Origin: Euprymna scolopes
Taxonomy: Eukaryota
Assembly: GCA_053919585.1 (NCBI GenBank)
Contig: CM132802.1
Strand: one strand, 5' to 3'
Length of the DNA: 64,000 nt
Positions 7,545 to 63,306 of the stretch are shown here, piece by piece (the first letter of the stretch is position 1; each line of letters starts with the position of its first letter). A program made the translations under genes and the position numbers. A model generated the notes under the pieces. It was not told the origin of the DNA. It made no database searches and worked only from the letters and a program-made list of their open reading frames with translations.

Positions 7545-8160
7545 TAGTGTAATACCTGCCCAATGAGGAGTAAAATTAATTCCCTGAACACTGCTTTTAT
7601 ACCCCCTTAAAAAGATTAAAATCAAGCTATAATAATGTCTAGAATTATTCAAATTTTGATCAATATCCATTACATGATTTTGATTCTAGAAAATTTCTAA
7701 AATTTAAGGCTTAAGCTTGAAGCGTTTTAAAATGAAATTAATATTCAAGAAATCTTGTTTAATTTGTGTCTAATGACTATGGATTAAATTCAATATGTAT
7801 CTGATTTGAATTTTCAGATTGGAGATTCTGCCCATACCATTCCTCCTAAATACCATTTAAAATACCCCCCAAATTGAAATTTCGTATATATTTATTAATT
7901 ACAGATTAATATCTATTGTCCAAATTTCATAAAAATCGGATGTATCTGGATTTTTGCAACGTGCTTCAACTCCCACCTTCTTTTAACTCGTTTGCCTAAA
8001 ACTAAGTTAAACCAAATATAGCTCACATTTGGACCCCTTAACTGTAGATACCTATGCTCAAAAATTAATTATTATCAGGTGATTAGTTCAGGAATTCTGT
8101 ACATACAAATATATAGATATAGATACATACCTATCTTTACACAGAGAGACATAAGCAAAA
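7545..8160 (-). mobile_element. Helitron-like family A copy
   Basis: actagt terminus; sequence colinear with about 6090-6560. Confidence 0.65.
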
Positions 8161-8162
8161 TG

Positions 8163-8206
<44 letters not shown>

Positions 8207-8293
8207 AAAATCATAAAAACTTATAAATCTATAAGGAAAGTATACAAAATTTTTATTATTTGGCAAGGAGTACAAATAAAACAAGGAAAAGAT

Positions 8294-8344
<51 letters not shown>

Positions 8345-8349
<5 letters not shown>

Positions 8350-8530
8350 ACCCGAATATAAGAAAAAATCTTTTCAGGTTTTCAGGTCCCAAATTAGAGC
8401 TTGTGTAAATGTACAGGGTAACCCGGATGTAAGTGGAATCCGGATATAAGAGAGCTAAATCCCCCCCGTATGTTATATCCGTTAAATATGTTATATCCGG
8501 GTTATATTGTAACCCGGATATAATATATCT
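8345..8530. mobile_element. MITE-like remnant with inverted AACCCGGATATAA motifs
   Basis: gtaacccggatgtaag, ttatatccgggtta and taacccggatataa occur in both orientations. Confidence 0.45.
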
Positions 8531-9249
8531 TATTTTCATATTTTTAATATATCCAATTGAGCAATTCTGAGTCCCTTAAATTCGAACTTTTCACAAAAAA
8601 AAAAGATAGTTTTCTTTTCAGAGGCTTAAGATAACTTTGACAATTATAAAAATTAGCTTTAAATATTTTTGAAAATTATAAAAATTATTAAACAGTTCTT
8701 AAGAAAGATAAATCATTTTAGAAGGGATTTAGAAGGAAAAATATAACTTTTTAAATCTATCTATATATGTATGTATGTGCATGTGTATCAGTTTATATAT
8801 GTATAGAGAGAGAGAAGGGGGGAGAGAGAGACAAAGATTATTATAAAGATTACAGAGAGTTTCAAAGAGAGATAACTTTTCATTCCATTTTTACTTATCT
8901 GCTCTGAATTTATCTCTGATGAAAAAATGACTGGTTTACTTGATATTACATCCAGCAATAATATCCCTTTTTTTCCTAAATTCACTTTTAAGCTTTTCAC
9001 TGCCCAAATTATTCCTTGCTGCGTTTTATTAAAATGATTATTGAAAAAAAAAGTAAGCAAATCGCTTTATATAACAGTTAAACCAATCTAATGAGCATGC
9101 TCTTTAATGGGCTGACCCCCTTTTTGCTAACTGCTGTTACTACGTGGATTGCCCCTACGACTAATGTTGTAGTGGTCAATAAACCCTTACAACGCTGAAC
9201 CGTTCTTCACCTGCTTGGGCAGTCATTCATATAAAAAATTTCATTTATA

Positions 9250-15392: not shown

Positions 15393-15524
15393 CATCAGCA
15401 GGTACTGAGTCGGACTTCCAAGTCCAGAAGTCTGTTGTGAGTGAACAACAGAAGAAAGAAATTAAAGAAGAGTTCCAAAAGCTGGAAGTCAGCGTTGATG
15501 TGAAACGCGAGCACAAGAAATCAG
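15393..15524 (+). CDS. 132-nt symmetric (phase 1-1) internal exon, E/K/V-rich
   Basis: Acceptor cacttttctttAG (15391-92), donor TCAG|GTAACT (15524/25). Encodes SAGTESDFQVQKSVVSEQQKKEIKEEFQKLEVSVDVKREHKKS. Composition and phase match the other exons. Confidence 0.8.
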
Positions 15525-16284
15525 GTAACTATACAATGAGAGATGATCTTCTGCAGCACGTAATAAAGCCTGGGTTTCTTTTTTTTATCTTTTTGAAAAA
15601 AAAAATCTTACCAAATATTTTTTACCTGTGATAAAAATGCATTCCTTGACTTAATATGATTTGTTTATTGATGTGAGTTATCTACCCTTGAATTGAACGA
15701 TGATGCCTTGCTATAAATTCCCAAAATCTTTAATACTCCTGGCCTCTAATTATTGCTTTATACAAACGGTTTGTATGATTAACAATATTCATGGGAGGAA
15801 AAAAAAAATTTTAATTGATATTTTGCAGAAACATTACAAAGATAAAACATGTTGAATAAATAACTTTACATGAATAACATGTAAAATCTATATAATAATA
15901 TGCTAAGACAATTTCATGACTTTATCGCCCTTTCACTGTCGAAGATGCAATTACAAAAAAAAAATCATTTTTTTTAAAATTTCATCTGATGTCACTATGT
16001 GGTGAACATAAAACTTAAATTAAAATACACTTCTTTGGCCTTTGGACTAGGATCAAAGTGTAGCATCTGCTTTATCCAACGATTGTATAATAATATTGTG
16101 GGTTCCTTGTTCTTGCCGGGCATCCATATCAAAATATATCAAAAACTCCTGCAAGTGTTTTGCAAATAGACCCTCCCACACACTTATAATCTGAATTATT
16201 CTGAAACTATTCAAAAGTTCGATGAGCAGCAAATTAAATTTTTTGTTTAACAAAAAAAGATTTATTGAATTATATTGGTTGCTG

Positions 16285-18346: not shown

Positions 18347-18919
18347 TTTTTGATGTTAATTCAGGTTATGTTTCTGAATTTTGGAGATGAGGATCGATAA
18401 TTTGTATTATTTGAACTACTGTTCTCATCTTGAGAATTCAGGTTAATTTCTAATCATAAAATATTCAACTTGGACTCCTTATTTTAAAGTCAATATTCTG
18501 ATTGTCTTGATTCTTTGGAAATTTAATTATCTGACTACGACTCTTTCCAAAACTTTGACTTTGACTCCAACTCTGCAACCCTGGTTTAAATTGGATTTTA
18601 ATATTTTTTTTTTATTATTTATTTTTTTTTTTCAGCTTTACTTCAGGTTAATTTCAAGTGATAATTTAAAACCTAGAAAAATGCTATAATCCTTACTCCA
18701 TTTTTAGAAAATATTTTATTTGTGAAGCAAATATTGAGATTTTATGATATTGTTTATGAGAAGAATAAATGCCTTTGTACAATAATACGCCAGTACTTTC
18801 GTTTGTACCTCCATTATTAAAAGTTCGGATTGTGTTGCAGCTAAATGATAAGAAATGCATCTGTCGGCTCTCCTCCTCTCCCCATTATTCATAGCATGTC
18901 TCCCTGTTTCCTTCCCTAG

Positions 18920-19051
18920 AGTCTCCACCTGTTGCTGAAGTGAGCCCTTTGATTACGAAGACAGAAACAACGATAATTACTGAAGAAACTACTCAAACAA
19001 TTACCGACAGAAGAGTAGACAAAGAGACTACTCAAACAGCTCCCTCGGAAG
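18920..19051 (+). CDS. 132-nt symmetric (phase 1-1) T/E-rich exon; extends to 19200 if the donor is not used
   Basis: Long pyrimidine tract tctccctgtttccttccctAG (AG 18918-19). Encodes ESPPVAEVSPLITKTETTIITEETTQTITDRRVDKETTQTAPSE. Candidate donor GAAG|GTGGGG at 19051/52, phase 1. Confidence 0.75.
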
Positions 19052-19200
19052 GTGGGGAACCCGCACAATTTGAGGATTCCAGCATGCAGACCTTCCTCTT
19101 GACCATGATAATGGCAATGATGTTGATACGATTCATGGCGTGGCTCTTAAGTTTTGGTTGCTGTTTTTGGTGTTGTTTCTTCTGTTGTCTTTGGCAGTGA
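19052..19200 (+). CDS. Putative alternative terminal extension encoding a hydrophobic, Cys-rich C-terminal tail
   Basis: In-frame continuation GGEPAQFEDSSMQTFLLTMIMAMMLIRFMAWLLSFGCCFWCCFFCCLWQ-TGA; visibly more GC-rich than the bulk intron. Confidence 0.5.
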
Positions 19201-20681
19201 GAATTGGGGGAACAAAGAAACATCAAACCATCCAACAACGGCTCATCTGATTGCTGTCCCCCCAAAACGATATGCATGGCATAATTCAAAGAAACAAAAC
19301 CATCAGGCTAACAATATTTTTGCTTATTTTTAATTTTTGTAAAATTACTTATATTAAAAAGCTGTTATAACCCCAGGAATTTAAGTAAAGGAAAGTTTAA
19401 ATTAGGAATTCTGTTGAGTTAGATGTTCATCTCTTTCTCTAACATTTGCATTTTGTCCAAAAGAATTATGTTTTATGCTTTAGATATGCTGAATTAATAT
19501 TTCATTTTTCAAAGAAATTCTTTTTGATTGTATAAAAAATAGATCTGCAGTATTTTTTAATTTAAGTTTAAAAAGACCCTCAATTTTCGCTCTTGTATGA
19601 CTGCTGTTTTTTCTTTGTATTTTTCTGAAAAAGCATCAGTTTCTTGCAAGTTAGTTTATGCTTTACTCTCATAAAATACTCAAGATCTTCATGCTATGAA
19701 CTTGCTTTAAAATAATGTTTACTTTTGATGACAGTTCAGAGTTTTAGATAAAGTAGATGCTAATATTCATTTGAAGCTTTGGTGTATTATTTATTCAACT
19801 ATATATTAAAAATCTATTTCAACTGACAAAACACTTTCTATAATAATACAGATATGGTTCATTGTGAAATGATATAGCTTATTGTGAACAGGAAAATTAA
19901 GTGTTTCATTTTAGATTTTTATTTTATTTATATAATTTTGAAACATAGTGTTACAAAAATAATGGTTATACTATATTTAAGACATCCATTTATAAACTGA
20001 ATCAGTTAAGCAAATAAATATATATTATATATTATTTCTAAATGTTAATTTTCATAGTCAAGTACTTAGAAAGACTTTTATTATTTTATAAATAGGTACA
20101 AGCTAAAACAAACTCATTTGCGTAAATTAAAATCTATTAGCAAAATAATTTAGAAGAATAAGAATCTTCTAGTATAAATTAGTATATTAGAATCTTCTAT
20201 GGTGATTATTTAGAATTTAATTTATTTATTCATTTTATGTGAAATGATTTTTTTTGTTTTCAACTGGGGTTATAACAAACTTTGTTAGAAGCAGGTGGCC
20301 TGATATTATGACAGTAAAGTATTGGCTTTGTTATTTCATAAGTAATGCTGTTTATAAATCAAAGTAAATTGAATCGAATCAAAGAATTATTTCTGCAAAC
20401 CTGTCTTTGGTTCAGCAGCAATTTGTACATTTGAATAGAGAATGTTTAAATAAATGAATTGGATTTATCATAATTATTGCTTTTTTGTGTCATGAAGTAT
20501 TTGAGTGGTGCAGTAACTAATGTTTGGAAGGCAAAGGGCATGATATTTCCTTCTATTTTTCAAACTAGGCTTCATTACAGACATACTTTGTTGAATGCTG
20601 CTTTTTATATACTAGATTGCATATTCATTGAACTATATGTTCTTTTATGATGTATTTGAAGTGAATAAAACGTCAGTAGGT

Positions 20682-33210: not shown

Positions 33211-33867
33211 GCAGCTGTGTTCTAAAATTCATAATTATCAGTTAATTAGTTTAAGAGTTAATTCTTTACATAAATACATGCTGACCTATGGCACAGTCAG
33301 CTGCTTTTCTGCACGCTAATGTAGAGGTGTCAGTATTGCTTCTTCAGTTCTTTGCTATGAGTTGACACCCTTTCCTGCCCCTCTTGTAGTTTCTATATAA
33401 ATAATTAATGGTGGCAGGCAGTGTGACTGCCAACCTTAGTCTCCCATTTGTTCAAGGAGATGTTGCACACACTAAAGTCCCTCCTGCAGGTGTCTTTAAA
33501 TCAGAGTGAAGGATAACCAAAGGCCATGCACTCTTGTCCTGTCCAACTATTTGTATAAGAGATTCTTCAGCAATCTTGCAACGCTTAATCGGCAGAAACG
33601 TCTATCCATTGTAGGCAGCACTGTTTCAGAAAAATTATATGCTGGAAATCTCCAGCACAAATTAGGGTAGACTACAACCTTGCTATTTAATTCCAATGAT
33701 GTGTCACGAACGCATGTAAGAATATACTAAACATAATATACAAAGGGAATAAAAATCACAGACATAGTTATTAAATGAAAGGCAATGTTAATCAAAAAAT
33801 CACAGACATAGTTATTCAATGAAAATGCTATGTTAATTGTTCATATACAATAAAAGTACACATGTTG
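33211..33867 (+). repeat. ~650-bp near-identical direct repeat, copy 1
   Basis: Matches 39113-39730 nearly base for base except a ~30-bp indel. Confidence 0.92.
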
Positions 33868-35204: not shown

Positions 35205-36743
35205 AGGATATTTGAGCATTTACAGATCCACTCTCCTGATGTGTTCATACATTTTTTATTTAAAACCTCATTTTCTGTTGCTAGAACTAATGATAATATG
35301 ATAAATACTTATTTATTTCCAACCACCAGTGGAACTAAAATTTATAGATCATAATAGTAAATTTAGCAAAATACAAAAAATAGCTTGATAAAAATAACAC
35401 CGGTAAAAAATGACACGGGTGGATAAATAGAAAAAATGGCACAAGTGAAAAATATGGATCTAAACCTGACAATGAGTTTTATGAAATTTTGGATAAAATA
35501 CATAAAGGAAAAACTGTAACGAAATTATACTCACACTTAAAAGTAGAATCCCTCCCCTCTCTAAAAAAATGAAATTCTACTTAGGCAATTAGATGATTTT
35601 GGAATCAGAATCATTAATTGTTTCAAAATCGAGAATTTAGAATAGAATCAAAAAAATATTGGAATCATCACATTGCTAATATATAAATGTGTGTGTGTGT
35701 GTGTGGTTGTTATTATTGGCATGGCTGCCTGTTAAGGATAAACTTTTGCTAGATCTTTAAATATCCCAAATGATAAGAATAACATAAGAAAACACTAAGA
35801 AACAAGAGAAAGACTTAAAGCCGAGTTACTGACATCTTAAAACCAGTTTCCTTGGGTTAACAAAGCTTGTTAGTTTTGGATGGAGAAGGATCATTTTCAT
35901 TTTAAACCTGAGGTAGGTATTTGACAACCTATCTAGGAGCAGGTAACTCTGATATAAAACAAACATCTATATTGATTACCGGTCATCTTACCTTAGCATG
36001 TCCCCAGGTTATAATCATAGATGCTTAAAGAGTGGTACTTATATACAAGCATTTGTCATTATAACCACAATTATTACATAGACATACTAAAAGTACTTTC
36101 ACCATAGAGGGGTGACAAAGTATAATATATGACCTATGAGGACACAAAGCCACAATTCTGCACAGGCAATAAATTTATCCATTTACATCTTCTTTTGTTG
36201 ATAATCTTTAAAAAAAATGAATTACTTTGCGACCCTTTGTAATTTGAAAGGAATTTGGAAGCATTTATACTATCAGATAGTAGGTTATTTAAACTGGCTT
36301 AAAAAATTCTTAACAAATTACACACATATTAATTAAAATTTTGGAAGCTAATTAGCACAAACAATTTTTTAAAATTCTAGATTCCTCCAAATCCTAATTA
36401 CGAAATTTCAAATATATTACTACTCCTATCTCCCACTCAGAACCTGTTTTTTTTTTATTAAAGCAATCCCCTCAACACAAAAATAACTTTAAGAAAACGC
36501 TATTAAAAAAAGTGATATTACTTTATCTGTCTATATCTAATATAGTTGTGAGATTAGTTACACTAACAGCCATATTAAAACACTCTTTCAGATTCACAGA
36601 ACAGAAACCAATATCGTTCTGTTTCTCCTAGGTATATGTGAGCTACATGGTAAAGTCAACAAATTTGCAAAAGTTATTTCTGGGTGTTGCAATACTTAGT
36701 TTCCTCTATTTTTCTGGAAAACGTCAGGACACTGGTTCAGCTA

Positions 36744-36784
<41 letters not shown>

Positions 36785-36852
36785 TAGACTAAGGTTTGTG
36801 ATTCTTGGATATCACAATATTCCTGGGCAACGGCAGAACAAGGGTCATGCTA

Positions 36853-36914
<62 letters not shown>

Positions 36915-36919
<5 letters not shown>

Positions 36920-37114
36920 CAAAAGAAATCACCACTTATCAAGGCCTGGAGGTCACTTGAGGATACGGGTTAATGAGTGTACGGTAGTTAATGAGACAAT
37001 ATCATAGTAATCGTTAATAGAGGAAATTTGGTGTATTGGATTACTTAAGAAGTTGTTCACGTTGGACTTCAAGACCACATTGTAGTCAGTTAGAAAGTAG
37101 GGAAACAGAAGAGA

Positions 37115-37152: not shown

Positions 37153-38037
37153 TAGCATTTCAGCCCGACGTTGCCCGGGTGTTTGGAGGTGTGTGTTGAG
37201 CAACACAAAAAAAAAGTGGTAGTAGGAAGGCAGGCTCGAACCCATACCACGAAGGAGGAAAAGAATGGGAAAAAAACATGACGTCTTTGCTGTTATGACC
37301 ACCGCCAAACCGGAAGTGACGTAGGTTTAAATTAAGGCTAAACAATCGAAAAGAGGGGATGACTTTTGATGATATCGGTGAAAAAAGCAACCCCTACCTG
37401 TAGAAAAGTGCCCACTTGAGGGTGTAGAAATTAATGTTTTAGCCAATTTTTCAGTATTTGTCGTCTGAATGGTCGAACTTTAAAACGATACTAATCTTGT
37501 GAAAATCCGTCGCCTCTGTCGAAAGTTTTAGGCAGACATGCATACATACATACATTTATATATTGGTAGCTAAAATTTTCGACCCAAATCAATTAAAAAG
37601 CTTGCCCTATCTCTGAATACCCTTTATGTAAAATTTCAAATGTTTAGACCAGAAATTGTCTGTGTAATTTGATAGAGACCGCAGAGGTCAATTTTTTTTT
37701 TTTAACTTTGACCCCTATTATGACCCTTTAACATTTATTGTTTTGGGCTCTAATCAAGTTATTAAGTTAGATCCATGTCTAAGTAACCTATATCTAAAAT
37801 TTCAATTGTTTATACCCAAAATTGGCAGAGGAGTTTGGTAGAGTTCTCACAGGTCAAATCGTTGAACTTTGACCCCTTAACAGCCAAATTTCTGTCCGAA
37901 AACGGATTACAAAGATTTTCCCAAATCTCACTATCCTGTGTATCAAATTTCGAGTCTGTAGACTGCAAATTGATAGAGTTATTGTGTAGGGAAATGTACA
38001 CAGACAGACACACACAAACAGACAAACAGACACTTTC

Positions 38038-38045
<8 letters not shown>
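37152..38045 (-). mobile_element. Helitron family B copy, longer and probably composite
   Basis: 3' hairpin cccgggcaacgtcggg...gcta on the minus strand; 37681-38045 is the reverse complement of 20682-21030; (TA)n on both flanks. Confidence 0.75.
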
Positions 38046-38101
<56 letters not shown>

Positions 38102-38213
38102 GCAAATAGTTAATAAAACATGTTAAAAATACTTTGAAAAAGAGTTAAAAACATTTAATCTGAAAAGGAAACACTTTTTTCAATTTTTGGTAAATTTAAT
38201 TGTAATTTTTATT

Positions 38214-39180: not shown

Positions 39181-39730
39181 TATACATGCTGACCTATGGC
39201 ACACTCAGTTGCTTTTCTGCACGCTAATGTAGAGGTGTCAGTATTGCTTCTTCAGTTCTTTGCTATGAGTTGACACCCTTTCCTGCCCCTCTTGTAGTTT
39301 CTATATGAATAATTAATGGTAGCAGGCAGTGTGATTGCCAACCTTCACAATAAAGTCCCTCCTGCAGGTGTCTTTAAATCAGAGTGAAGGATAACCAAAG
39401 GCCATGCACTCTTGTCCTGTCCAACTATTTGTATAAGAGATTCTTCAGCAATCTTGCAACGCTTAATCGGCAGAAACATCTATCCATTGTAGGCAGCACT
39501 ATTTCAGAAAAATTATATGCTGGAAATCTCCAGCACAAATTAGGGTAGACTACAACCTTGCTATTTAATTCCAATGATGTGTCACGAACGCATGTAAGAA
39601 TATACTAAACATAATATACAAAGGGAATAAAAATCACAGAGATAGTTATTAAATGAAAGGCAATGTTAATCAAAAAATCACAGACATAGTTATTCAATGA
39701 AAGGCAATGTCAATAAATGTACACATGTTG
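39113..39730 (+). repeat. ~620-bp direct repeat, copy 2
   Basis: See 33211-33867. Confidence 0.92.
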
Positions 39731-50760: not shown

Positions 50761-51357
50761 TTCTATATTAAATATTTATTCTTTCAACACAAATAAGTCA
50801 CAAATGAGTTTGATGCTTCTTTATTATTACTCACAAGTGAAAATTACACTTTACGTAAACACACGTTGCTGTACTTACATGTCATGCTGGAATAAGTATC
50901 CACACCAAAAATTAGAAAAAATGACTGAGTAAAAGATTAATTACAAATAAAACTCAATTTTATTGTAAAATGCAGTTTTATCGTATTACATTGTTCTTTT
51001 TTCTTGCTTAAATGGAAGAATGTCTTATCTCCCTGATTTATGAGAACTTCCAGTACTTCTGCTGTTATGAATGGCAGATCAAAAAATATGATAAGACCAA
51101 TGTTTATTTTTAATAAAAAGTTCTACATGATCTTCTTTTTTTATTATTTCTTGTTGAAGATAATTTTTTCTGCATGACAAATTAGTACATGAAAGTATTT
51201 CTACTTGAAATGCGATTTTCAGTTGTGATTAATAGTAAAGAACCACCTTTATTTCCCAATAGTATTTTCTTTAAAATGTCGTTATTAGTGACGATTACCA
51301 ATAAAACTTTGTAATTCATTTAAAGCAATTCTAATGAAGAATTTTTGTTTGTTGCAG

Positions 51358-51639
51358 GTAAGGAACCGACAATTCTTAAACATTTGGTTGATATTGAATC
51401 TTTTGAAGGAGAACCTGCATATTTTGAATGCCATGTTTCTGGCAATCCAATGCCAGAAGTGAAATGGTATTGCGATGATATGCCTATTAATGAATCTGTA
51501 TTTGAAGCCATTACATTGGAAGGTGGCATTTGTCGCTTGATCATTCAGGAGACATTTCCTGAAGATGAAGGCGAATACCAATGTATCGCCACAAATGAAT
51601 ATGGTTCAGCAAGCACAGTATGTGCTCTGTATGTCTCAG
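51358..51639 (+). CDS. 282-nt symmetric exon encoding one Ig I-set domain
   Basis: Acceptor tttttgtttgttgCAG, donor TCAG|GTATGT. KEPTILKHLVDIESFEGEPAYFECHVSGNPMPEVKWY...FPEDEGEYQCIATNEYGSASTVCALYVS is a canonical titin-type I-set domain. Confidence 0.93.
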
Positions 51640-54004
51640 GTATGTCGTGTCTTGACTTTTCATCATTTTCCAGCAACAATTTTTTTTTAAATATATGAAA
51701 CAGGTGTTAAAAACGTTAAATATAAATTGACTACAAGTTTGAAAGTTATCCATTACAGAATAAAATTCTGCAATTTGATATTTTAAAATAACAGTTTGAA
51801 TGCAAAAATGCGGTAAACCCAATTTGCTTAAATTGAGACATTATGCATTAAAAACACAAATATATAAAATCTTTATTTGGACAAAAAGTTTATTTTAATT
51901 GAAAGCAAAAATAAGTTATGCCAGTGTCATATCATCTAAAAACATGACTTGGAAGTTTTGAACTGTAATGGTTTTTGTAGTGATAACTTTGCAATTTTTT
52001 AAATGGCGTTTATCGCGTTTTATGTTTGAACACTTCAAATTTTGCATGCAGTGTTGTTTTTAGTGTTTTATTGATTCATTTTTAAAAACCTCTCTTAATA
52101 ATTCTCATCTGTTTTCAGAATGTTTAAATGTTCTTTTTATATGACTTTTCAACCTCAATATTATAATTTTGCCTATCCCAATAACCTTTGACCAATTATA
52201 TTATAATCCCATTGTTCAAACAATTAATCACAATTTGAAAATCAAAATACTTTGGAGTATTTAAATCAGAAAATTTTTTACCTAATTTCCGATGCCAAAA
52301 ACGATTCTTTTAATTATTATTTTTTTTAAAACTTAATTTTCTTTTGCTAGTACTAATGATACTATAATAAATATTTATTGATTTTAAACTACCAACAAAA
52401 CTAAAACTTATAAATCATAATAACGAATTTAGATAAAAATGACACCGGAAATATGGCCTGGTAAAAATAACACGAGCAAAAATGGCACGAGTAGATCAAT
52501 AGGAAAAATGGCACAAGTAAAAAGTATAGATAAAAATCCCATAATCAGTTTATAAAAATCTTGAACACAAGGAAGGGGAAACATTAAAAAGCTGGTTAAA
52601 TTAAAAAGAAAATGTTATCTACATTTACCCCAATGCAAACTTTGAGGTACATGAATACATGGCAGAACAGATAATGGTGATTTTTATACTAATAAAGCAC
52701 CATTTATCAAGGCCATTTATCAAGGCCCAAAATCCATTTAAGCATAAGGGTTAATAGAGTGTTAGCTGAATGATAAACAACACTATGAGAAGATTAGATA
52801 ACGATGGCTGGAAATGGTAGAATCTGATTACTTAAAGATGACAGATTGGCAAGTGTTTGTTAACATTTGACTTTAAAACGGCTATGTTGGAATCAGCAGG
52901 GAAGCAGTCTCATGGTATTGTTCGACAGAGTGGAAGTTAATATTGGACTTGAATAAGAGTGTTAAGTAACAATCAGTTCTAAGTGACAGTCTCTTCTGGA
53001 GGTTGAAAGTTCAATCCTTATTACAAGCACTACTAACTAAAAGTAGAATTAAAATTATTTTAGACTTCCATCTGTTTATGGATAATAAAGTAACAATTTA
53101 TTCGATCGATTAAGTGAAGATTTCAGTTTGAAATTTTGTAGTAATTTCTGATTTCAACATAAATATTCTCTAACTTGACAAGAAACATCTAAAATAAGGA
53201 CAGCAGTCCTAATAATCAATCCTTATTTAAAAAATTTCAAAACTTAATACAACTATTTTAAAAATTTGTACCAACATGCAGAAATTTAAATGTAACGTCA
53301 ATAAGCGTTTTGTTGCCTAACTCGTCACTTAGGTTGCTCCCAACCCCTATAAATCTGGTCCCCAAAACAACAACCCCACATACTTCACTGGCATATATAT
53401 ATATATATATATATATATACTTTTTTGGAATGGACAAAGTAAACAAAATATTTAGGACACCCCCAAAAACTTAATCATCAGTCTGTATTGTTTCCTTTTA
53501 ATTTAAATCAATAAATATATTTCAAGTGCATTAGAAAACAATATTAACGTTTGGATTGGTTTTTTGTAATTGTTAAAAAAAAAATTGCAGAAAAATATAC
53601 AAATAAACAATGCTAAATAACCATTTTCAAGAATTTTTTCATAATAATATTTTTACTTGCCTTCCTAGGAGGGAAGAATTATACATAAGGTCGGTTTCTA
53701 ATGTGGGGAAATCCAGCTCCCTCTAAAATGCAGCACTCTTGATTGTTATAAATATAAATATGTCTCAGTCCAAAAGGATTTCTCTTTCACTGACCGACGA
53801 CTGAAAAGATGTTGTACAGTATCAAAACAGATACTACACTTTGCCCCCAAGTGTTAGAAGGTGTACGTTTATTTTTCTTTAGTAATATGCTATGTCACAG
53901 CTCAATCTTGTTATGCCAGCAATTAAATACTCCATTATATGATTATCATTTAATTGGTCAATGGTTACATTTGCTTTGTTTGACACAAAATTTTAAGACT
54001 TGAT

Positions 54005-55225: not shown

Positions 55226-58200
55226 ATCAATTGCCGATTGATGATGCTGATGATGCCATCTGCGAATATAAAGAAACTGGAGAATCGAAAGAAGAAAAAG
55301 CTGAAGAAGTTTTTGCGCAACAACCTGTCTCCCGTGAGGAAAGCCAAACCAATTTGTTCTCAGCTGATATTGAAACACTCCCTATTTCGGAGCAAGAAAT
55401 AATTCTTGACCAATCTTCATCTGGTGCTGCTGTCGTAAAACCCATTTCAACAGTTATAGAATCAAAGCAAATAAATGTACATGAAGAAAAGCCACTCATT
55501 GCTAAAGTCGAAGAAAGATATCCTGACACAATTGAAGATGAAAGTGAAGATGAACTATTTGAAGAGATTCCAGAGAGTGTCAAAACAGTTAGCATCCAAG
55601 AAACTATGCAAATTGAAGTTACTTCAGAAAGAACAGAATCAGATGTAAAAGAAGAAGAAGAATCATTGTCAGAAGAAGAATTCTATGAAGTTTCATCTAC
55701 TGAAGTTGAACAAACCAAGTTTGAAAAAGTAAAACCTAAAGATAGCAAAATTGATATAACTGTTACATCAAAATCACTTGTTGCTGAAGGCACTACACCA
55801 GTTATTGAAGAAATAACAGAACATATTACAGAAGAATGTGAAGTCAAACCTCAAACTGAAGAAGTACTCATATCAGAGATGGAACAGATTGTTGTACCTA
55901 GAGCAGTGGAATCTTTTGTTCCTGAAGGAGAAGAAGTCAGAAAAGAGATGTCAGTCATCACGCTGAAATCTGACAAGGAATTAAAACCAGAAATCTCAGA
56001 AGTAATGCCTGAAGTTGTAAAAGACATATCTGCTATTTCTGTATTAACCATTGCTACTGAAAGCAAAGATACTACCGCTATTGAAAAAGTCACAGATGTA
56101 ATTCCAGAGACTGAAGTAAAACCAAAAGATCATGATGTCATAACCACTGAAAAGTTACAAATCACAGTTAGTAGTAGTTCACCTAGTGTCTCCAAAGAAG
56201 AGGTGGAACAAATAACGGAATCTACAACTCTAGAAGTAATGCCACTCAAAGAAACGGTTCCACAATCAGAAGAAGTACACATTCAGTTATCTAATATATC
56301 TATTGCTCCTACGAAGGAGTCTTCAGTTGTTATTAGTGACGAAATAAAAACTGTGGAGCAAGTGTCAGTCGTTGCTGAAACTGAGGTTCCACAAGTTTCT
56401 GAATTTGTTATTCCTGTTGTTGAGCCAGCTAAGATTATATCAGAGATTACAACTGATGTTAAAGAAAGTGAAGAAGTTGTTTTTGATGAAAAGGTAAAAG
56501 ATGTTCCTTCACAAATTACAATCGATATTGAATCAAAGAAAATAAGTCCAGAAAAACAGAAACCATTAATCAGTAAGGTAGAGGAAACTTTCATACATGA
56601 AGATGAAGAAAAAGATTCTGGTGATGAAGTATTTGATGTACCTTCTGAGAGTGTGGAAAATGTTTCTGTGCAACAGATTAAGTCTGGAGACATTCAGCTC
56701 TCTATCAAATCTGCTATGGTTGCAATGATAGATGAAGCTAAAGAGATACAAGAAAAGGATGAAGTTTCAGCATTAACACCTGCAAAGGAAGTAACTGTCG
56801 GTCAAGAAAAGGTTATTTCTGTAATTGCTAGTGAAAAGACAACAGACACTGATGCTATGCAAACTGTAGTTTCAGTTAAAAAGGGTTCTTTGTCAGAAGA
56901 AGAATTCTATGAAGTTTCATCTACTGAAGTTGAACAAACCAAGTTTGAAAAAGTAAAACCTAAAGATAGCAAAATTGATATAACTGTTACATCAAAGTCA
57001 CTTGTTGCTGAAGGCACTTCACCTGTTATCGAAAAAATAACAGAACATATTACAGAAGAATGTGAAGTCAAACCTCAAACTGAAGAAGTACTCATATCAG
57101 AGATGGAACAGATTGTTGTACCTAGAGCAGTGGAATCTTTTGTTCCTGAAGGAGAAGAAGTCAGAAAAGAGATGTCAGTCATCACGCTGAAATCTGACAA
57201 GGAATTAAAACCAGAAATCTCAGAAGTAATGCCTGAAGTTGTAAAAGACGTATCTGCTATTTCTGTATTAACCATTGCTACTGAAAGCAAAGATACTACG
57301 GCTATTGAAAAAGTCACAGATGTAATTCCAGAGACTGAAGTAAAACCAAAAGATCATGATGTCATAACCACTGAAAAGTTACAAATCACAGTTAGTAGTA
57401 GTTCACCTAGTGTCTCCAAAGAAGAGGTGGAACAAATAACGGAATCTACAACTCTAGAAGTAATGCCACTCAAAGAAACGGTTCCACAATCAGAAGAAGT
57501 ACACATTCAGTTATCTAATATATCTATTGCTCCTACGAAGGAGTCTTCAGTTGTTATTAGTGACGAAATAAAAACTGTGGAGCAAGTGTCAGTCGTTGCT
57601 GAAACTGAGGTTCCACAAGTTTCTGAATTTGTTATTCCTGTTGTTGAGCCAGCTAAGATTATATCAGAGATTACAACTGATGTTAAAGAAAGTGAAGAAG
57701 TTGTTTTTGATGAAAAGGTAAAAGATGTTCCTTCACAAATTACAATCGATATTGAATCAAAGAAAATAAGTCCAGAAAAACAGAAACCATTAATCAGTAA
57801 GGTAGAGGAAACTTTCATCCATGAAGATGAAGAAAAAGATTCTGGTGATGAAGTATTTGATGTACCTTCTGAGAGTGTGGAAAATGTTTCTGTGCAACAG
57901 ATTCAGTCTGGAGACATTCAGCTCTCCATCAAATCTGCTATGGAAACTGCTGTTCCTAGTAAACAGGATTCTTTCTCAGATGAAGAATTCTTTGAAGTTT
58001 CATCTACTGAAGTTGAACAGACCAAGTTTGAAAAAGTAAAACCTGAAGATAGCAAAATTGATATAACTGTTACATCAAAATCACTTGTTGCTGAAGGCAC
58101 TACACCTGTTATTGAAGAAAAAACAGAACATATTACAGAAGAATATGAAGTCAAACCTCAAACTGGAGAAGTACTCATATCAGAGATGGAACAGATTGTT

Positions 58201-61200
58201 GTACCTAGAGCAGTGGAATCTTTTGTTCCTGAAGGAGAAGAAGTCAGAAAAGAGATGTCAGTCATCACGCTGAAATCTGACAAGGAATTAAAACCAGAAA
58301 TCTCAGACGTAATGCCTGAAGTTATAAAAGACGTATCTGCTATTTCTGTATTAACCATTGCTACTGAAAGCAAAGATACTACGGCTATTGAAAAAGTCAC
58401 AGATGTAATTCCAGAGACTGAAGTAAAACCAAAAGATCATGATGTCATAACCACTGAAAAGTTACAAATCACAGTTAGTAGTAGCTCGCCTAGTGTCTCC
58501 AAAGAAGAGGTGGAACAAATAACGGAATCTACAACTCTAGAAGTAATGCCACTCAAAGAAACAGTTCCACAATCAGAAGAAGTACACATTCAGTTATCTA
58601 ATATATCTATTGCTCCTACGAAGGAGTCTTCAGTTGTTATAAGTGACGAAATAAAAACCGTGGAGCAAGTGTCAGTCGTTGCTGAAACTGAGGTTCCACA
58701 AGTTTCTGAATTTGTTATTCCTGTTGTTGAGCCAGCTAAGATTATATCAGAGATTACAACTGATGTTAAAGAAAGTGAAGAAGTTGTTTTTGATGAAAAG
58801 GTAAAAGATGTTCCTTCACAAATTACAATCGATATTGAATCAAAGAAAATAAGTCCAGAAAAACAGAAACCATTAATCAGTAAGGTAAAGGAAACTTTCA
58901 TCCATGAAGATGAAGAAAAAGATTCTGGTGATGAAGTATTTGATGTACCTTCTGAGAGTGTGGAAAATGTTTCTGTGCAACAGATTAAGTCTGGAGACAT
59001 TCAGCTCTCTATCAAATCTGCTATGGTTGCAATGATAGATGAAGCTAAAGAGATACAAGAAAAGGATGAAGTTTCAGCATTAACACCTGCAAAGGAAGTA
59101 ACTGTCGGTCAAGAAAAGGTTATTTCTGTAATTGCTAGTGAAAAGACAACAGACACTGATGCTATGCAAACTGTAGTTTCAGTTAAAAAGGGTTCTTTGT
59201 CAGAAGAAGAATTCTATGAAGTTTCATCTACTGAAGTTGAACAAACCAAGTTTGAAAAAGTAAAACCTAAAGATAGCAAAATTGATATAACTGTTACATC
59301 AAAATCACTTGTTGCTGAAGGCACTTCACCTGTTATCGAAGAAATAACAGAACATATTACAGAAGAATGTGAAGTCAAACCTCAAACTGAAGAAGTACTC
59401 ATATCAGAGATGGAACAGATTGTTGTACCTAGAGCAGTGGAATCTTTTGTTCCTGGAGAAGAAGAAGTCAGAAAAGAGATGTCAGTCATCACGCTGAAAT
59501 CTGACAAGGAATTAAAACCAGAAATCTCAGAAGTAATGCCTGAAGTTGTAAAAGACGTATCTGCTATTTCTGTATTAACCATTGCTACTGAAAGCAAAGA
59601 TACTACCGCTATTGAAAAAGTCACAGATGTAATTCCAGAGACTGAAGTAAAACCAAAAGATCATGATGTCATAACCACTGAAAAGTTACAAATCACAGTT
59701 AGTAGTAGTTCACCTAGTGTCTCCAAAGAAGAGGTGGAACAAATAACGGAATCTACAACTCTAGAAGTAATGCCACTCAAAGAAACGGTTCCACAATCAG
59801 AAGAAGTACACATTCAGTTATCTAATATATCTATTGCTCCTACGAAGGAGTCTTCAGTTGTTATTAGTGACGAAATAAAAACTGTGGAGCAAGTGTCAGT
59901 CGTTGCTGAAACTGAGGTTCCACAAGTTTCTGAATTTGTTATTCCTGTTGTTGAGCCAGCTAAGATTATATCAGAGATTACAACTGATGTTAAAGAAAGT
60001 GAAGAAGTTGTTTTTGATGAAACGGTAAAAGATGTTCCTTCACAAATTACAATCAATATTGAATCAAAGAAAATAAGTCCAGAAAAACAGAAACCATTAA
60101 TCAGTAAGGTAGAGGAAACTTTCATCCATGAAGATGAAGAAAAAGATTCTGGTGATGAAGTATTTGATGTACCTTCTGAGAGTGTGGAAAATGTTTCTGT
60201 GCAACAGATTCAGTCTGGAGACATTCAGCTCTCCATCAAATCTGCTATGGAAACTGCAGTTCCTAGTAAACAGGATTCTTTCTCGGATGAAGAATTCTTT
60301 GAAGTTTCATCTACTGAAGTTGAACAAACCAAGTTTGAAAAGGTAAAACCTGAAGAAAGCAAAATTGATATAACTGTTACATCAAAGTCACTTGTTGCTG
60401 AAGGCACTTCACCTGTTATCGAAGAAATAACAGAACATATTACAGAAGAATGTGAAGTCAAACCTCAAACTGAAGAAGTACTCATATCAGAGATGGAACA
60501 GATTGTTGTACCTAGAGCAGTGGAATCTTTTGTTCCTGAAGGAGAAGTCAGAAAAGAGATGTCAGTCATCACGCTGAAATCTGACAAGGAATTAAAACCA
60601 GAAATCTCAGACGTAATGCCTGAAGTTGTAAAAGACGTATCTGCTATTTCTGTATTAACCATTGCTACTGAAAGCAAAGATACTACGGCTATTGAAAAAG
60701 TCACAGATGTAATTCCAGAGACTGAAGTAAAACCAAAAGATCATGATGTCATAACCACTGAAAAGTTACAAATCACAGTTAGTAGTAGTTCACCTAGTGT
60801 CTCCAAAGAAGAGGTGGAACAAATAACGGAATCTACAACTCTAGAAGTAATGCCACTCAAAGAAACAGTTCCACAATCAGAAGAAGTACACATTCAGTTA
60901 TCTAATATATCTATTGCTCCTACGAAGGAGTCTTCAGTTGTTATTAGTGACGAAATAAAAACTGTGGAGCAAGTGTCAGTCGTTGCTGAAACTGAGGTTC
61001 CACAAGTTTCTGAATTTGTTATTCCTGTTGTTGAGCCAGCTAAGATTATATCAGAGATTACAACTGATGTTAAAGAAAGTGAAGAAGTTGTTTTTGATGA
61101 AAAGGTAAAAGATGTTCCTTCACAAATTACAATCGATATTGAATCAAAGAAAATAAGTCCAGAAAAACAGAAACCATTAATCAGTAAGGTAGAGGAAACT

Positions 61201-63306
61201 TTCATCCATGAAGATGAAGAAAAAGATTCTGGTGATGAAGTATTTGATGTACCTTCTGAGAGTGTGGAAAATGTTTCTGTGCAACAGATTCAGTCTGGAG
61301 ACATTCAGCTATCCATCAAATCTGCTATGGAAACTGCTGTTCCTAGTAAACAGGATTCTTTCTTGGATGAAGAATTCTTTGAAGTTTCATCTACTGAAGT
61401 TGAACAAACCAAGTTTGAAAAAGTAAAACCTGAAGATAGCAAAATTGATATAACTGTTACATCAAAATCACTTGTTGCTGAAGGCACTTCGCCTGTTATC
61501 GAAGAAATAACAGAACATATTACAGAAGAATGTGAAGTCAGGCCCCAGACTGAGGATGTCTTGATATCGGAGATGGACCAAATTGTGGTACCTAGCAAAA
61601 TGGAAACTTTTGTTCCTGAAGGAGAAGAGATGAGGAAAGAAATTTCTCTCACAATAAAGTCTGCTGAAGAATTTAAACCGCAGTTTTCACAAGTGATGCC
61701 TGAAGTTGTAAAAGACATATCTGCTATTTCTGTATTGACAATTTCTACTGAAAGCAAAGATACTACGGCTATCGAAAAAGTCACAGACGTAATTCCAGTG
61801 ATTGAAGGAAAAACCAAAGCTGATGAGTTTGAAGTCCGACCACAAACTGAAGAAGTCTTGATATCAGAAATGGAACAAATCATTTTACCTAGTGCAGCGG
61901 AATGCCCTGTTAGTGAAAGCAAAGAGAAACTTGTTCCTGCTTCTTTGGAATATGATTCTAAAGAAGTTTTGCTTGAACCATTTAGAGTCGATATCATATC
62001 TGAGATAGGTGATAAATCTGATATCTTTTCTGCACAAGAATCAGTTATTCCTGTGGATGTGAAACTTCTTGTAACTGAAGAAAGCGAAATATCTCTGATT
62101 GAAGAACAGTTACCATCTCCAAAAGAAGGCAGCATTGAAGATCTTTCTTTCTCTGATCAATCTTTAAGTCTATCTCCTTGTGAATCTGATTTGCCAGCTG
62201 ACAAAGCTCTCGTGAAAGACATTGAAGTAAGCCAAACATCACTCGCAGAGAAAGTTCTTGATGAAAAAGCAGTGGAATTTGAAAAATTCTCTCCATCTAT
62301 TAGTACTCCTGTCGTAACAGATGTCGGTACTGATGAGTTAATTATAGAAACAGAAGATTCTAGAGAAACACTTATTGATTCTTCTTCAGATATTTCATCT
62401 GAAGACATCGTTGGCATTCAGGATATTTCCACGGAAATTGCAACTTCTGGTGACGTCATATCTGAACATGATAAAGTTACAGTATCTCAGCTTGTAATTC
62501 ACGATGGACCACAAGAAGTGCCTGAACAAAAGTTATCTGAAGAGATCGAAGATGAGTCCATATGTGAGTCCTATGATTTAGGAATTTCTGCTCTTGAACA
62601 AGAAACTCAACCTAGTGTTGATGATATTGTGATTGAGCACACCAGTACGATGAAAATTACACAAGAATCTGATATAATTGAAAAACATTCTGAAGAATTA
62701 TCTGAGAAGATGTCTTTGGCAGAAGCTAATAAATCTGTAAAAGAAATAGCTATAGCTGATATTCCAGTTGATGAATCAAAACCTGAACTAGTCGTACAAA
62801 TAACTCCTAAAATAAAAGAAGAAGTAACCGCATTGATTCCTAAGGTACCTGTTGAACATCCAGAGTCTGAAATGCAGCTAACTCTTGATGTAGTTAAACC
62901 ATCTGAAGATACACAAATAGTCGAAAACATCGAACAATTGGATAGTTCGGTAGAGATTACATTCGAAGACGACACAGCAGCATCACCTGAAGTCATTGAG
63001 TCAACAATTATTCTCGCTGACAAAAAGGATAAACCGAAGAAAAAGGGAGTGGTATTTGCTGAGACTGTGGTTTTTGAAGAAGTAGGTGAGAGTCTAGATA
63101 CGATTCAACCAACTGTATCATGCGCAGGAGACCTCTTTGTTGAATCAAAAGAGAAGCTTGCTGGACCGAAGGACGTTCAGTTATTGAAAGAAGACGATTT
63201 AGGTATTTGGAAGGGCGATATGTCGGCTAAATGTATGCTAATGCACTTGCTGCTAGTGCTGCTGTTGCTGCTGCTTGAATGTATTCAAAGCGTCACTTCT
63301 ATGTAG
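55226..63306 (+). CDS. Giant exon of the titin-like gene: acidic low-complexity region with 361/408-aa tandem repeats. Phase-1 donors at 63085 and 63202; stop at 63304-63306 if unspliced
   Basis: Acceptor tttgatttgtaatAG (55224-25) in phase 1; about 8 kb without a stop. Donors GTAG|GTGAGA (63085/86) and TTAG|GTATTT (63202/03), both phase 1. Confidence 0.92.
55666..61900 (+). repeat. Coding tandem array: units of 1224, 1083, 1224, 1083 and 1080 bp plus a diverging partial sixth unit
   Basis: Unit starts at the (L/F)S(E/D)EEF(Y/F)EV motif: 55666, 56890, 57973, 59197, 60280, 61360. The antisense ORF offsets in the track show the same spacing. Confidence 0.95.

Follow-up and report, generated by a model that had tools for sequence, protein, structure and literature searches.

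A putative membrane-anchoring alternative C-terminus encoded within a titin-like gene of Euprymna scolopes

We analysed a 64,000-nucleotide (nt) stretch of DNA, hereafter called the window, from Euprymna scolopes (NCBI GenBank assembly GCA_053919585.1, contig CM132802.1; G000:C20:89,652,001-89,716,000). Positions 18920-19200 of its plus strand probably constitute a composite alternative terminal exon of a giant muscle gene related to titin/connectin (sallimus), in which an open 'tail' follows a linker across a weak internal 5' splice site. If the donor between 19051 and 19052 is used, the 132-nt linker would be included as a phase 1-1 cassette, and the transcript would proceed to an immunoglobulin (Ig) exon at 51358 and a giant exon at 55.2-63.3 kb. 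If this donor is left unused and cleavage of the transcript occurs farther 3', translation would extend for 49 codons, appending a short acidic segment next to the membrane and a hydrophobic helix of ~36 residues, after which a single residue completes the chain. The predicted product is a truncated Z-disc/I-band titin-like isoform that would be tail-anchored and tethered to the membrane of the endoplasmic or sarcoplasmic reticulum (ER or SR) or of the nuclear envelope. A conserved GCAUG sequence located 31-55 nt past the weak donor might permit an RBFOX-type factor to set the choice between splicing and read-through. The broader proposal, which we advance tentatively and with somewhat less than even confidence, is that molluscs make a membrane-anchored titin, wherein a GCAUG/RBFOX-gated switch ties the contractile lattice to the SR or nuclear envelope via an undescribed C-terminal anchor domain.

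The main parts of this arrangement are as follows, with a slash marking the boundary between exon and potential intron.

18900-18919, plus strand: acceptor of the linker/tail exon, a pyrimidine-rich tract (90% pyrimidine across the 20 nt 5' of the AG) and then AG, phase 1.
18920-19051, plus strand: linker part of the exon, 132 nt or 44 codons, acidic, Thr-rich and predicted to be disordered, phase 1-1.
19050-19057, plus strand: AG/GTGGGG, putative weak internal 5' splice site between linker and tail, its AG/GT in phase 1 and conserved.
19052-19200, plus strand: read-through tail, 49 codons beginning with the Gly codon whose first base is 19051, followed by a stop codon at 19198-19200.
15393-15524, plus strand: upstream exon of the titin-like gene, 132 nt, phase 1-1, equal in size and phase to 18920-19051.
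51358-51639, plus strand: next recognisable downstream exon, 282 nt, encoding an I-set Ig domain, phase 1-1, compatible with a splice from 19051.

Relatives of the tail share an anchor-like C-terminus

Translation of the frame from 18922 to 19202 yields an exon product of 92 residues, counting linker and tail. As reported in a first-pass annotation made from the letters of the window alone, this product closes with a 38-residue hydrophobic C-terminus that carries one charged residue (an Arg) and Cys-Cys pairs with a period of 4. The pairs occupy residues 80-81, 84-85 and 88-89, placing six Cys within ten residues.

A phmmer search of 1.84e9 representative proteins, clustered at 50% identity, recovered eight relatives of 75-183 residues (E-values of 1.8e-14 to 5.7e-4) whose alignments all cover the tail, and a profile search added three more to give a total of 11. 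None of these relatives carries a name or a Pfam domain. A word-index protein search with the 92-residue exon product gave no match, the tail-only profile A4 found no further members, the ESM Atlas offered no usable match for the tail, and none of the 190 pattern matches obtained by scanning JGI metagenome contigs with A4 was confirmed. Within its own genome (a 5.9-Gb assembly) the tail is single-copy, as protein and profile searches return only its locus. The relatives reside on AT-rich contigs with introns, and the taxa identified so far are the window genome and one bivalve. The bivalve relative (L034) derives from a gill metatranscriptome of the scallop Argopecten irradians (PMC10989825), and its tail exon is 99.7% identical in a second, unrelated run, DRR846142 (L035); the scallop-type tail exon is recovered repeatedly from bivalve samples.

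The 12 aligned sequences share a pattern that begins with an acidic patch and Asp-x-Ser-Met-Gln-x-Phe, continues through ~12 hydrophobic residues to an Arg or Lys (in 11 of the 12) and x-Leu-(Ala/Ser)-Trp, and ends with an invariant Cys before a stop codon 1-5 residues past the hydrophobic stretch. This stretch measures ~33-36 residues across the relatives, with the Arg/Lys at its centre. Residues D52, M55, F58, W74 and C81 are invariant, and S54 is nearly so. Near-invariant Gly-Trp is encoded at the splice site, where the window has Gly-Gly and relative L028 has no Gly.

One further element comes from structure prediction.

19066-19194, plus strand: predicted continuous alpha-helix, residues 49-91 of 92 (AlphaFold2, with a predicted local distance difference test score of 85-97 over residues 51-92).

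Residues 1-48 are predicted to be disordered (AlphaFold2, 12-sequence alignment). The hydrophobic part of the helix corresponds to 19093-19194 (residues 58-91) with the conserved Arg midway, and Kyte-Doolittle means over 19 residues are 1.5-2.1 along the last ~36 residues. A single hydrophobic helix located no more than ~30-40 residues from the C-terminus, with a very short end segment, is the hallmark of a tail anchor, and the few residues that follow the helix (1-5) remain few in all lineages. The N-terminus of the host protein is encoded beyond the window. The host protein would be cytosolic, judging from its titin-type Ig exons, and because the bulk of the protein would lie on that side, the tail is expected to enter the membrane post-translationally. 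Tail anchors with a very hydrophobic span and a flank that is not strongly basic are sorted to the ER. The C-terminal flank is strongly basic in no lineage, and hydrophobicity and flank together indicate that the destination is probably the ER/SR or the continuous nuclear envelope. The conserved Arg, 21 hydrophobic residues and the chain end resemble a classical anchor, an arrangement that leaves ~12 hydrophobic residues on the cytosolic side.

The first-pass annotation had viewed the tail as a transmembrane helix with an S-palmitoylation cluster, similar to CYSTM or cysteine-string anchors. Its hydrophobic, anchor-like C-terminal helix is borne out by AlphaFold2 and hydropathy, but its three Cys-Cys pairs are not conserved. 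Residues C84 and C88 are confined to this genome, which makes the doubled pairs genome-specific, and C81 alone is invariant. Cys residues at C85 and C89 (+4 and +8 of C81) are present in 7 of the 12 sequences, forming a C-x3-C-x3-C stripe on one helix face that the alignment indicates is ancestral. A clade made up of the other five has lost Cys at both C85 and C89.

These observations bear on the possibility that the tail is a lipid anchor, its Cys-rich end inserted into the cytosolic leaflet, either folded as a hairpin or lying peripherally, and held there by S-palmitoylation in the manner of cysteine-string protein or SNAP25. The crowding of Cys in the window, the stripe seen in most sequences and a hydrophobic stretch too long for one ordinary span would all suit such an anchor. 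However, the loss of two Cys positions from an entire clade does not, the AlphaFold2 helix is unbroken and makes no turn, and neither CYSTM (PF12734) nor any other Cys-rich anchor model matches the exon or the eight phmmer relatives (hmmscan with Pfam-A, E<=1). Moreover, a tail-anchored topology places the Cys cluster in the helix half away from the cytosol, which should put it out of reach of S-acyl transferases. Because the Cys are far from the cytosol in either arrangement of the span, palmitoylation is disfavoured unless the segment forms a non-spanning hairpin. We consider a lipid anchor unlikely, and the suggested palmitoylation cluster and CYSTM likeness, which also lacks a conserved run of Cys, are not sustained.

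The tail holds a conserved position in a titin-like gene

The window is AT-rich animal DNA (~30% guanine plus cytosine, GC), and one very large plus-strand gene spans it together with at least 100 kb on each side. This gene includes many single-exon I-set Ig domains, a Pro/Val/Lys-rich segment and giant exons rich in Glu, Val, Lys, Ser and Thr, whose open frames run to 2118 and 2696 codons. Two Ig exons of the window match PF07679 with E-values of 1.7e-15 and 9.3e-23 (Pfam-A hmmscan), and their best matches in the PDB are to titin (3b43 and 6fwx), with E-values of 4e-51 and 1.6e-26 for 3b43. Further Ig open reading frames (ORFs) are numerous on this strand across 260 kb, consistent with the tandem Ig array of titin, in which each domain has its own phase-1 exon, and a Pro/Val/Lys-rich ORF located ~80 kb upstream provides a PEVK-like segment. 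On these grounds the host gene is treated as titin/connectin (sallimus)-like, an assignment that covers the Ig and giant exons within the 264 kb examined.

The exons of the window form a phase-consistent chain that leads from an exon ending at 424 to 15393-15524, 18920-19051 and 51358-51639; at the first junction, base 424 and the two bases that open the exon at 15393 make up one codon. Similar surroundings are found in other lineages. On the 400-kb contig L028, the tail exon is flanked upstream by a 1622-codon ORF and an Ig exon and downstream by a 3676-codon ORF. On the 412-kb contig L036, a 2086-codon ORF and Ig exons precede the tail exon and another Ig ORF follows it, and Ig exons also lie upstream of the tail exon in L040 and L041. 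On all four contigs the Ig exons and giant ORFs share the strand of the tail exon. The Ig domain at the end of the upstream giant ORF of L036 finds its best match at 144-518 of the window, and the first Ig domain after the L036 tail exon finds its best match at 51357-51653 (50% identity, E-value of 1e-25). Because the Ig domains flanking the L036 tail match those flanking the window tail in the same order, gene order is collinear. Judged by this flanking sequence, the tail is shown to hold an orthologous position in the gene.

Conserved signals mark the boundary between linker and tail

An equivalent phase-1 acceptor precedes the linker in 11 of 11 lineages. In all 11, a phase-1 AG/GT also lies 10-18 codons 5' of the Ser-Met-Gln sequence and is kept at synonymous sites, with the Gly codon invariably GGT and the codon before it invariably ending in A. 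The boundary reads TAG/GTTGG in 9 of the 11 lineages, AAG/GTGGGG in the window, and AAG/GTTCGT in L028, where it is eight codons farther upstream. The retention of AG/GT where synonymous sites are otherwise saturated (more than one synonymous substitution per site, dS >1) suggests that a weak 5' splice site has been conserved. The earlier description of GAAG/GTGGGG at 19051/19052 as a suboptimal donor holds up beside its neighbours, which read GTAAGT (425), GTAACT (15525) and GTATGT (51640); GTGGGG at 19052 is the weak one. Whenever this donor is spliced, the linker would be a cassette exon. Use of the internal AG as an acceptor is unlikely, because only 35-50% of the 20 nt that precede it are pyrimidines (scored in the window and L027).

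It is conceivable that a separate, kettin-like gene instead ends at 19200 with this exon as its constitutive last one, and that a second gene supplies the Ig and giant exons farther downstream, leaving no switch to be controlled. Every lineage's exon does have its own stop codon, and no transcript evidence joins 19051 to the downstream exons. A constitutive last exon, however, fits poorly with a phase-1 AG/GT held at synonymous positions in all 11 lineages and in a phase that suits the Ig exon at 51358, or with flanking Ig and giant exons that are collinear and on one strand in three other lineages. We regard two separate genes as quite unlikely.

Just beyond the putative donor of the proposed composite terminal exon lies a second conserved signal.

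19082-19086, plus strand: GCAUG within AGC-ATG-CA, 31 nt past AG/GT, a candidate RBFOX-type element that also encodes Ser-Met.

GCAUG is the RBFOX word. The sequence (A/T)GCATGC occurs at +31 to +55 from AG/GT in 11 of 11 lineages, which at the sequence level is within the distance expected of an RBFOX site (less than ~100 nt downstream). The Ser codon, which offers the sole free position of GCAUG, is AGC in each of the 10 lineages that have Ser. When bound downstream of an alternative exon, Rbfox alters use of the exon, and fly Rbfox1 controls muscle isoforms including those of sls (PMC8742874). The conserved element in the tail exon suggests that an RBFOX-type factor could decide between splicing and read-through.

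The tail is translated in the linker frame

Rates of nonsynonymous (dN) and synonymous substitution in the tail were compared for three pairs of closely related sequences.

L036 and L042: dN 0.043, dS 0.42, ratio 0.10.
L036 and L037: dN 0.117, dS 1.39, ratio 0.08.
L033 and L042: dN 0.19, dS 1.24, ratio 0.15.

The first-pass annotation had proposed that orthologs be aligned and examined for frameshifts or stops, and this alignment reveals neither within the tail in any of the 11 relatives. The distance from AG/GT to the ATG is 33, 36, 39, 42, 48 or 57 nt, always a whole number of codons and free of stops, which shows that tail and linker are translated in a single frame. Taken together, these substitution patterns show the tail to be a real coding sequence under purifying selection. 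Protein-level constraint is far weaker in the linker, whose homologues measure 105-132 nt (357 nt in L028).

A separate observation concerns synonymous sites in the linker. Among L033, L036, L037 and L042, dS is lower in the linker than in the tail (0.10 versus 0.42, 0.28 versus 1.24 and 0.34 versus 1.75), and the linker has the higher dN/dS, in a small sample of ~42 codons (an example is the linker at L036:10056-10184). The low values hint at RNA-level constraint such as splicing enhancers.

Frame and conservation also bear on whether the tail could be an independent micropeptide, in which the invariant Met would start a single-pass peptide of ~38 residues from its own transcript or a retained intron, akin to the small regulators of SERCA in muscle. 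Met55 never varies, 10 of the 11 lineages carry an A at -3, and both the size and the single helix recall peptides of the phospholamban/sarcolamban type. Conservation nevertheless extends 5' of this Met to the invariant D52, the nearly invariant S54 and the near-invariant Gly-Trp, and the changes in length between AG/GT and ATG occur in whole codons, stop-free and always in the linker frame. A micropeptide is, on this evidence, very unlikely.

The open length of the tail is by itself not significant, since, within the window, runs of at least 49 open codons follow 3.5% of all intronic positions and 4% of the AGGT sites in introns, and the final 58 nt contain only 5% A, which makes stops improbable there. 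By way of an in-window control, read-through of exon 15393-15524 (into 15525-15631) is open for 35 codons and is likewise hydrophobic, but it is AT-rich and looks like a chance extension. That the tail, too, is a chance open frame in an A-poor, T/G-rich part of an intron is already refuted by its homologues, purifying selection, conserved context and a frame unbroken in 11 lineages.

Sequences 3' of the stop codon

Two features lie beyond the stop codon.

19273-19278, plus strand: full UGCAUG, in a GC-richer stretch 3' of the stop codon (putative 3' untranslated region).
19353-19358, plus strand: ATTAAA, weak candidate poly(A) signal, 153 nt 3' of the stop codon.

The GC fraction is 0.42 at 19201-19300 versus 0.26 at 19301-19700. 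An AATAAA is present at 20013. In the relatives, poly(A)-type hexamers lie at variable distances, and none is found within 1.5 kb in L036.

Evidence that weighs against a read-through anchor

Several observations tell against a composite terminal exon that encodes a tail anchor. The read-through isoform is a prediction from genomic sequence, and L034, the sole contig derived from a transcriptome, is unspliced and resembles pre-mRNA, and so is uninformative on splicing. The phmmer search returned no long annotated titin-like protein that ends in the tail; such a protein might still sit unseen within a 50%-identity cluster. A hydrophobic helix of 36 residues with a central Arg exceeds the usual span of a tail anchor, and roughly 21 of its residues would cross the membrane. 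Because GCAUG overlaps invariant codons, the independent support that it offers is modest (a conservative p of ~0.01). Lastly, the hexamers at 19353 and 20013 are located where the first-pass annotation had placed them as possible poly(A) signals, but such hexamers are frequent in AT-rich DNA and not significant, and they do not serve as evidence of polyadenylation.

Comparison with known systems

Truncated titin isoforms are known. Novex-3 is a truncated titin isoform produced via an internal stop codon and poly(A) site (PMC13649281), and kettin is a short isoform of sls (sallimus) in Drosophila (PMC11081514). The proposed isoform would resemble both in being a truncated titin-like product of an internal I-band exon with a stop codon and poly(A) site, such that the Z-disc/I-band end alone is retained. 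It differs in that Novex-3 and kettin have neither a hydrophobic membrane anchor nor similarity to the tail sequence, and their stop codon resides in a dedicated exon, whereas here it lies in the read-through of a conserved weak donor.

Nesprins with a KASH domain are similar in that a very large cytosolic filament protein carries a single C-terminal membrane helix. However, KASH has ~30 lumenal residues that end in PPPX and bind SUN proteins, whereas 1-5 residues follow the hydrophobic stretch here, and for the tail and its eight phmmer relatives Pfam gives no match, to KASH or otherwise (E<=1). Obscurin and small ankyrin 1.5 link the sarcomere to the SR, the role proposed here for the tail, and obscurin knockout changes SR architecture (PMC13649281). 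That link is a non-covalent contact between two proteins, whereas the anchor described here would belong to the titin-like chain itself. CYSTM and cysteine-string proteins share a Cys-rich hydrophobic C-terminus with the tail, but the core of the tail consists of Ser-Met-Gln, Arg, Trp and one Cys rather than a Cys string, no hidden Markov model match links them, and their hosts are small stress or DnaJ proteins as opposed to a giant Ig-domain protein.

The closest parallel in RNA processing concerns another gene family. In the immunoglobulin mu heavy chain gene, two C-termini, one of them a membrane anchor, arise through competition between a weak internal 5' splice site and a poly(A) site farther downstream. 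Both systems would employ a composite terminal exon, but here the polarity is reversed, as read-through would yield the anchor, and there is no kinship in the gene or in the proposed regulator (GCAUG).

Among the papers listed for titin together with tail anchoring, judged by title and abstract, none describes a tail-anchored titin, and a 2025 survey of connectin evolution nowhere mentions 'membrane' or 'transmembrane'. What is new is an alternative titin C-terminus in the form of a conserved, undescribed putative tail anchor, one that is kept across distant lineages yet is missing from Pfam, named proteins and the papers searched. Titin-like proteins have so far been regarded as purely myofibrillar springs or rulers. 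The coupling of invertebrate myofibrils to the SR and other membranes is poorly understood, and vertebrates need separate obscurin and small ankyrin proteins for this purpose. If the proposal is correct, a titin isoform with a covalent membrane anchor would add a new element to the architecture of muscle and would bring with it a new small anchor domain. The weak donor and GCAUG together would form a concrete, testable splice switch.

Other features of the host gene and window

The giant exon at 55231-63306 contains near-identical repeat units of several hundred residues each. Its 3' end carries in-frame GT sites and then a Leu-rich hydrophobic stretch, called 'Tail 2' in the first-pass annotation. 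Within the long intron, two near-identical 56-codon open frames (33500-33667 and 39378-39545) lie 5.9 kb apart and are presumably copies of a dispersed repeat. Microsatellites of (TA)n at 8075-8539, 36684-37007 and 37835-38113 give rise to spurious ORFs with Tyr-Ile repeats on both strands. A GC-richer plus-strand ORF of 244 codons (46% GC; L013:5825-6556), situated ~34 kb 5' of the window in another part of the titin-like gene and within one of its introns, resembles a transposase remnant.
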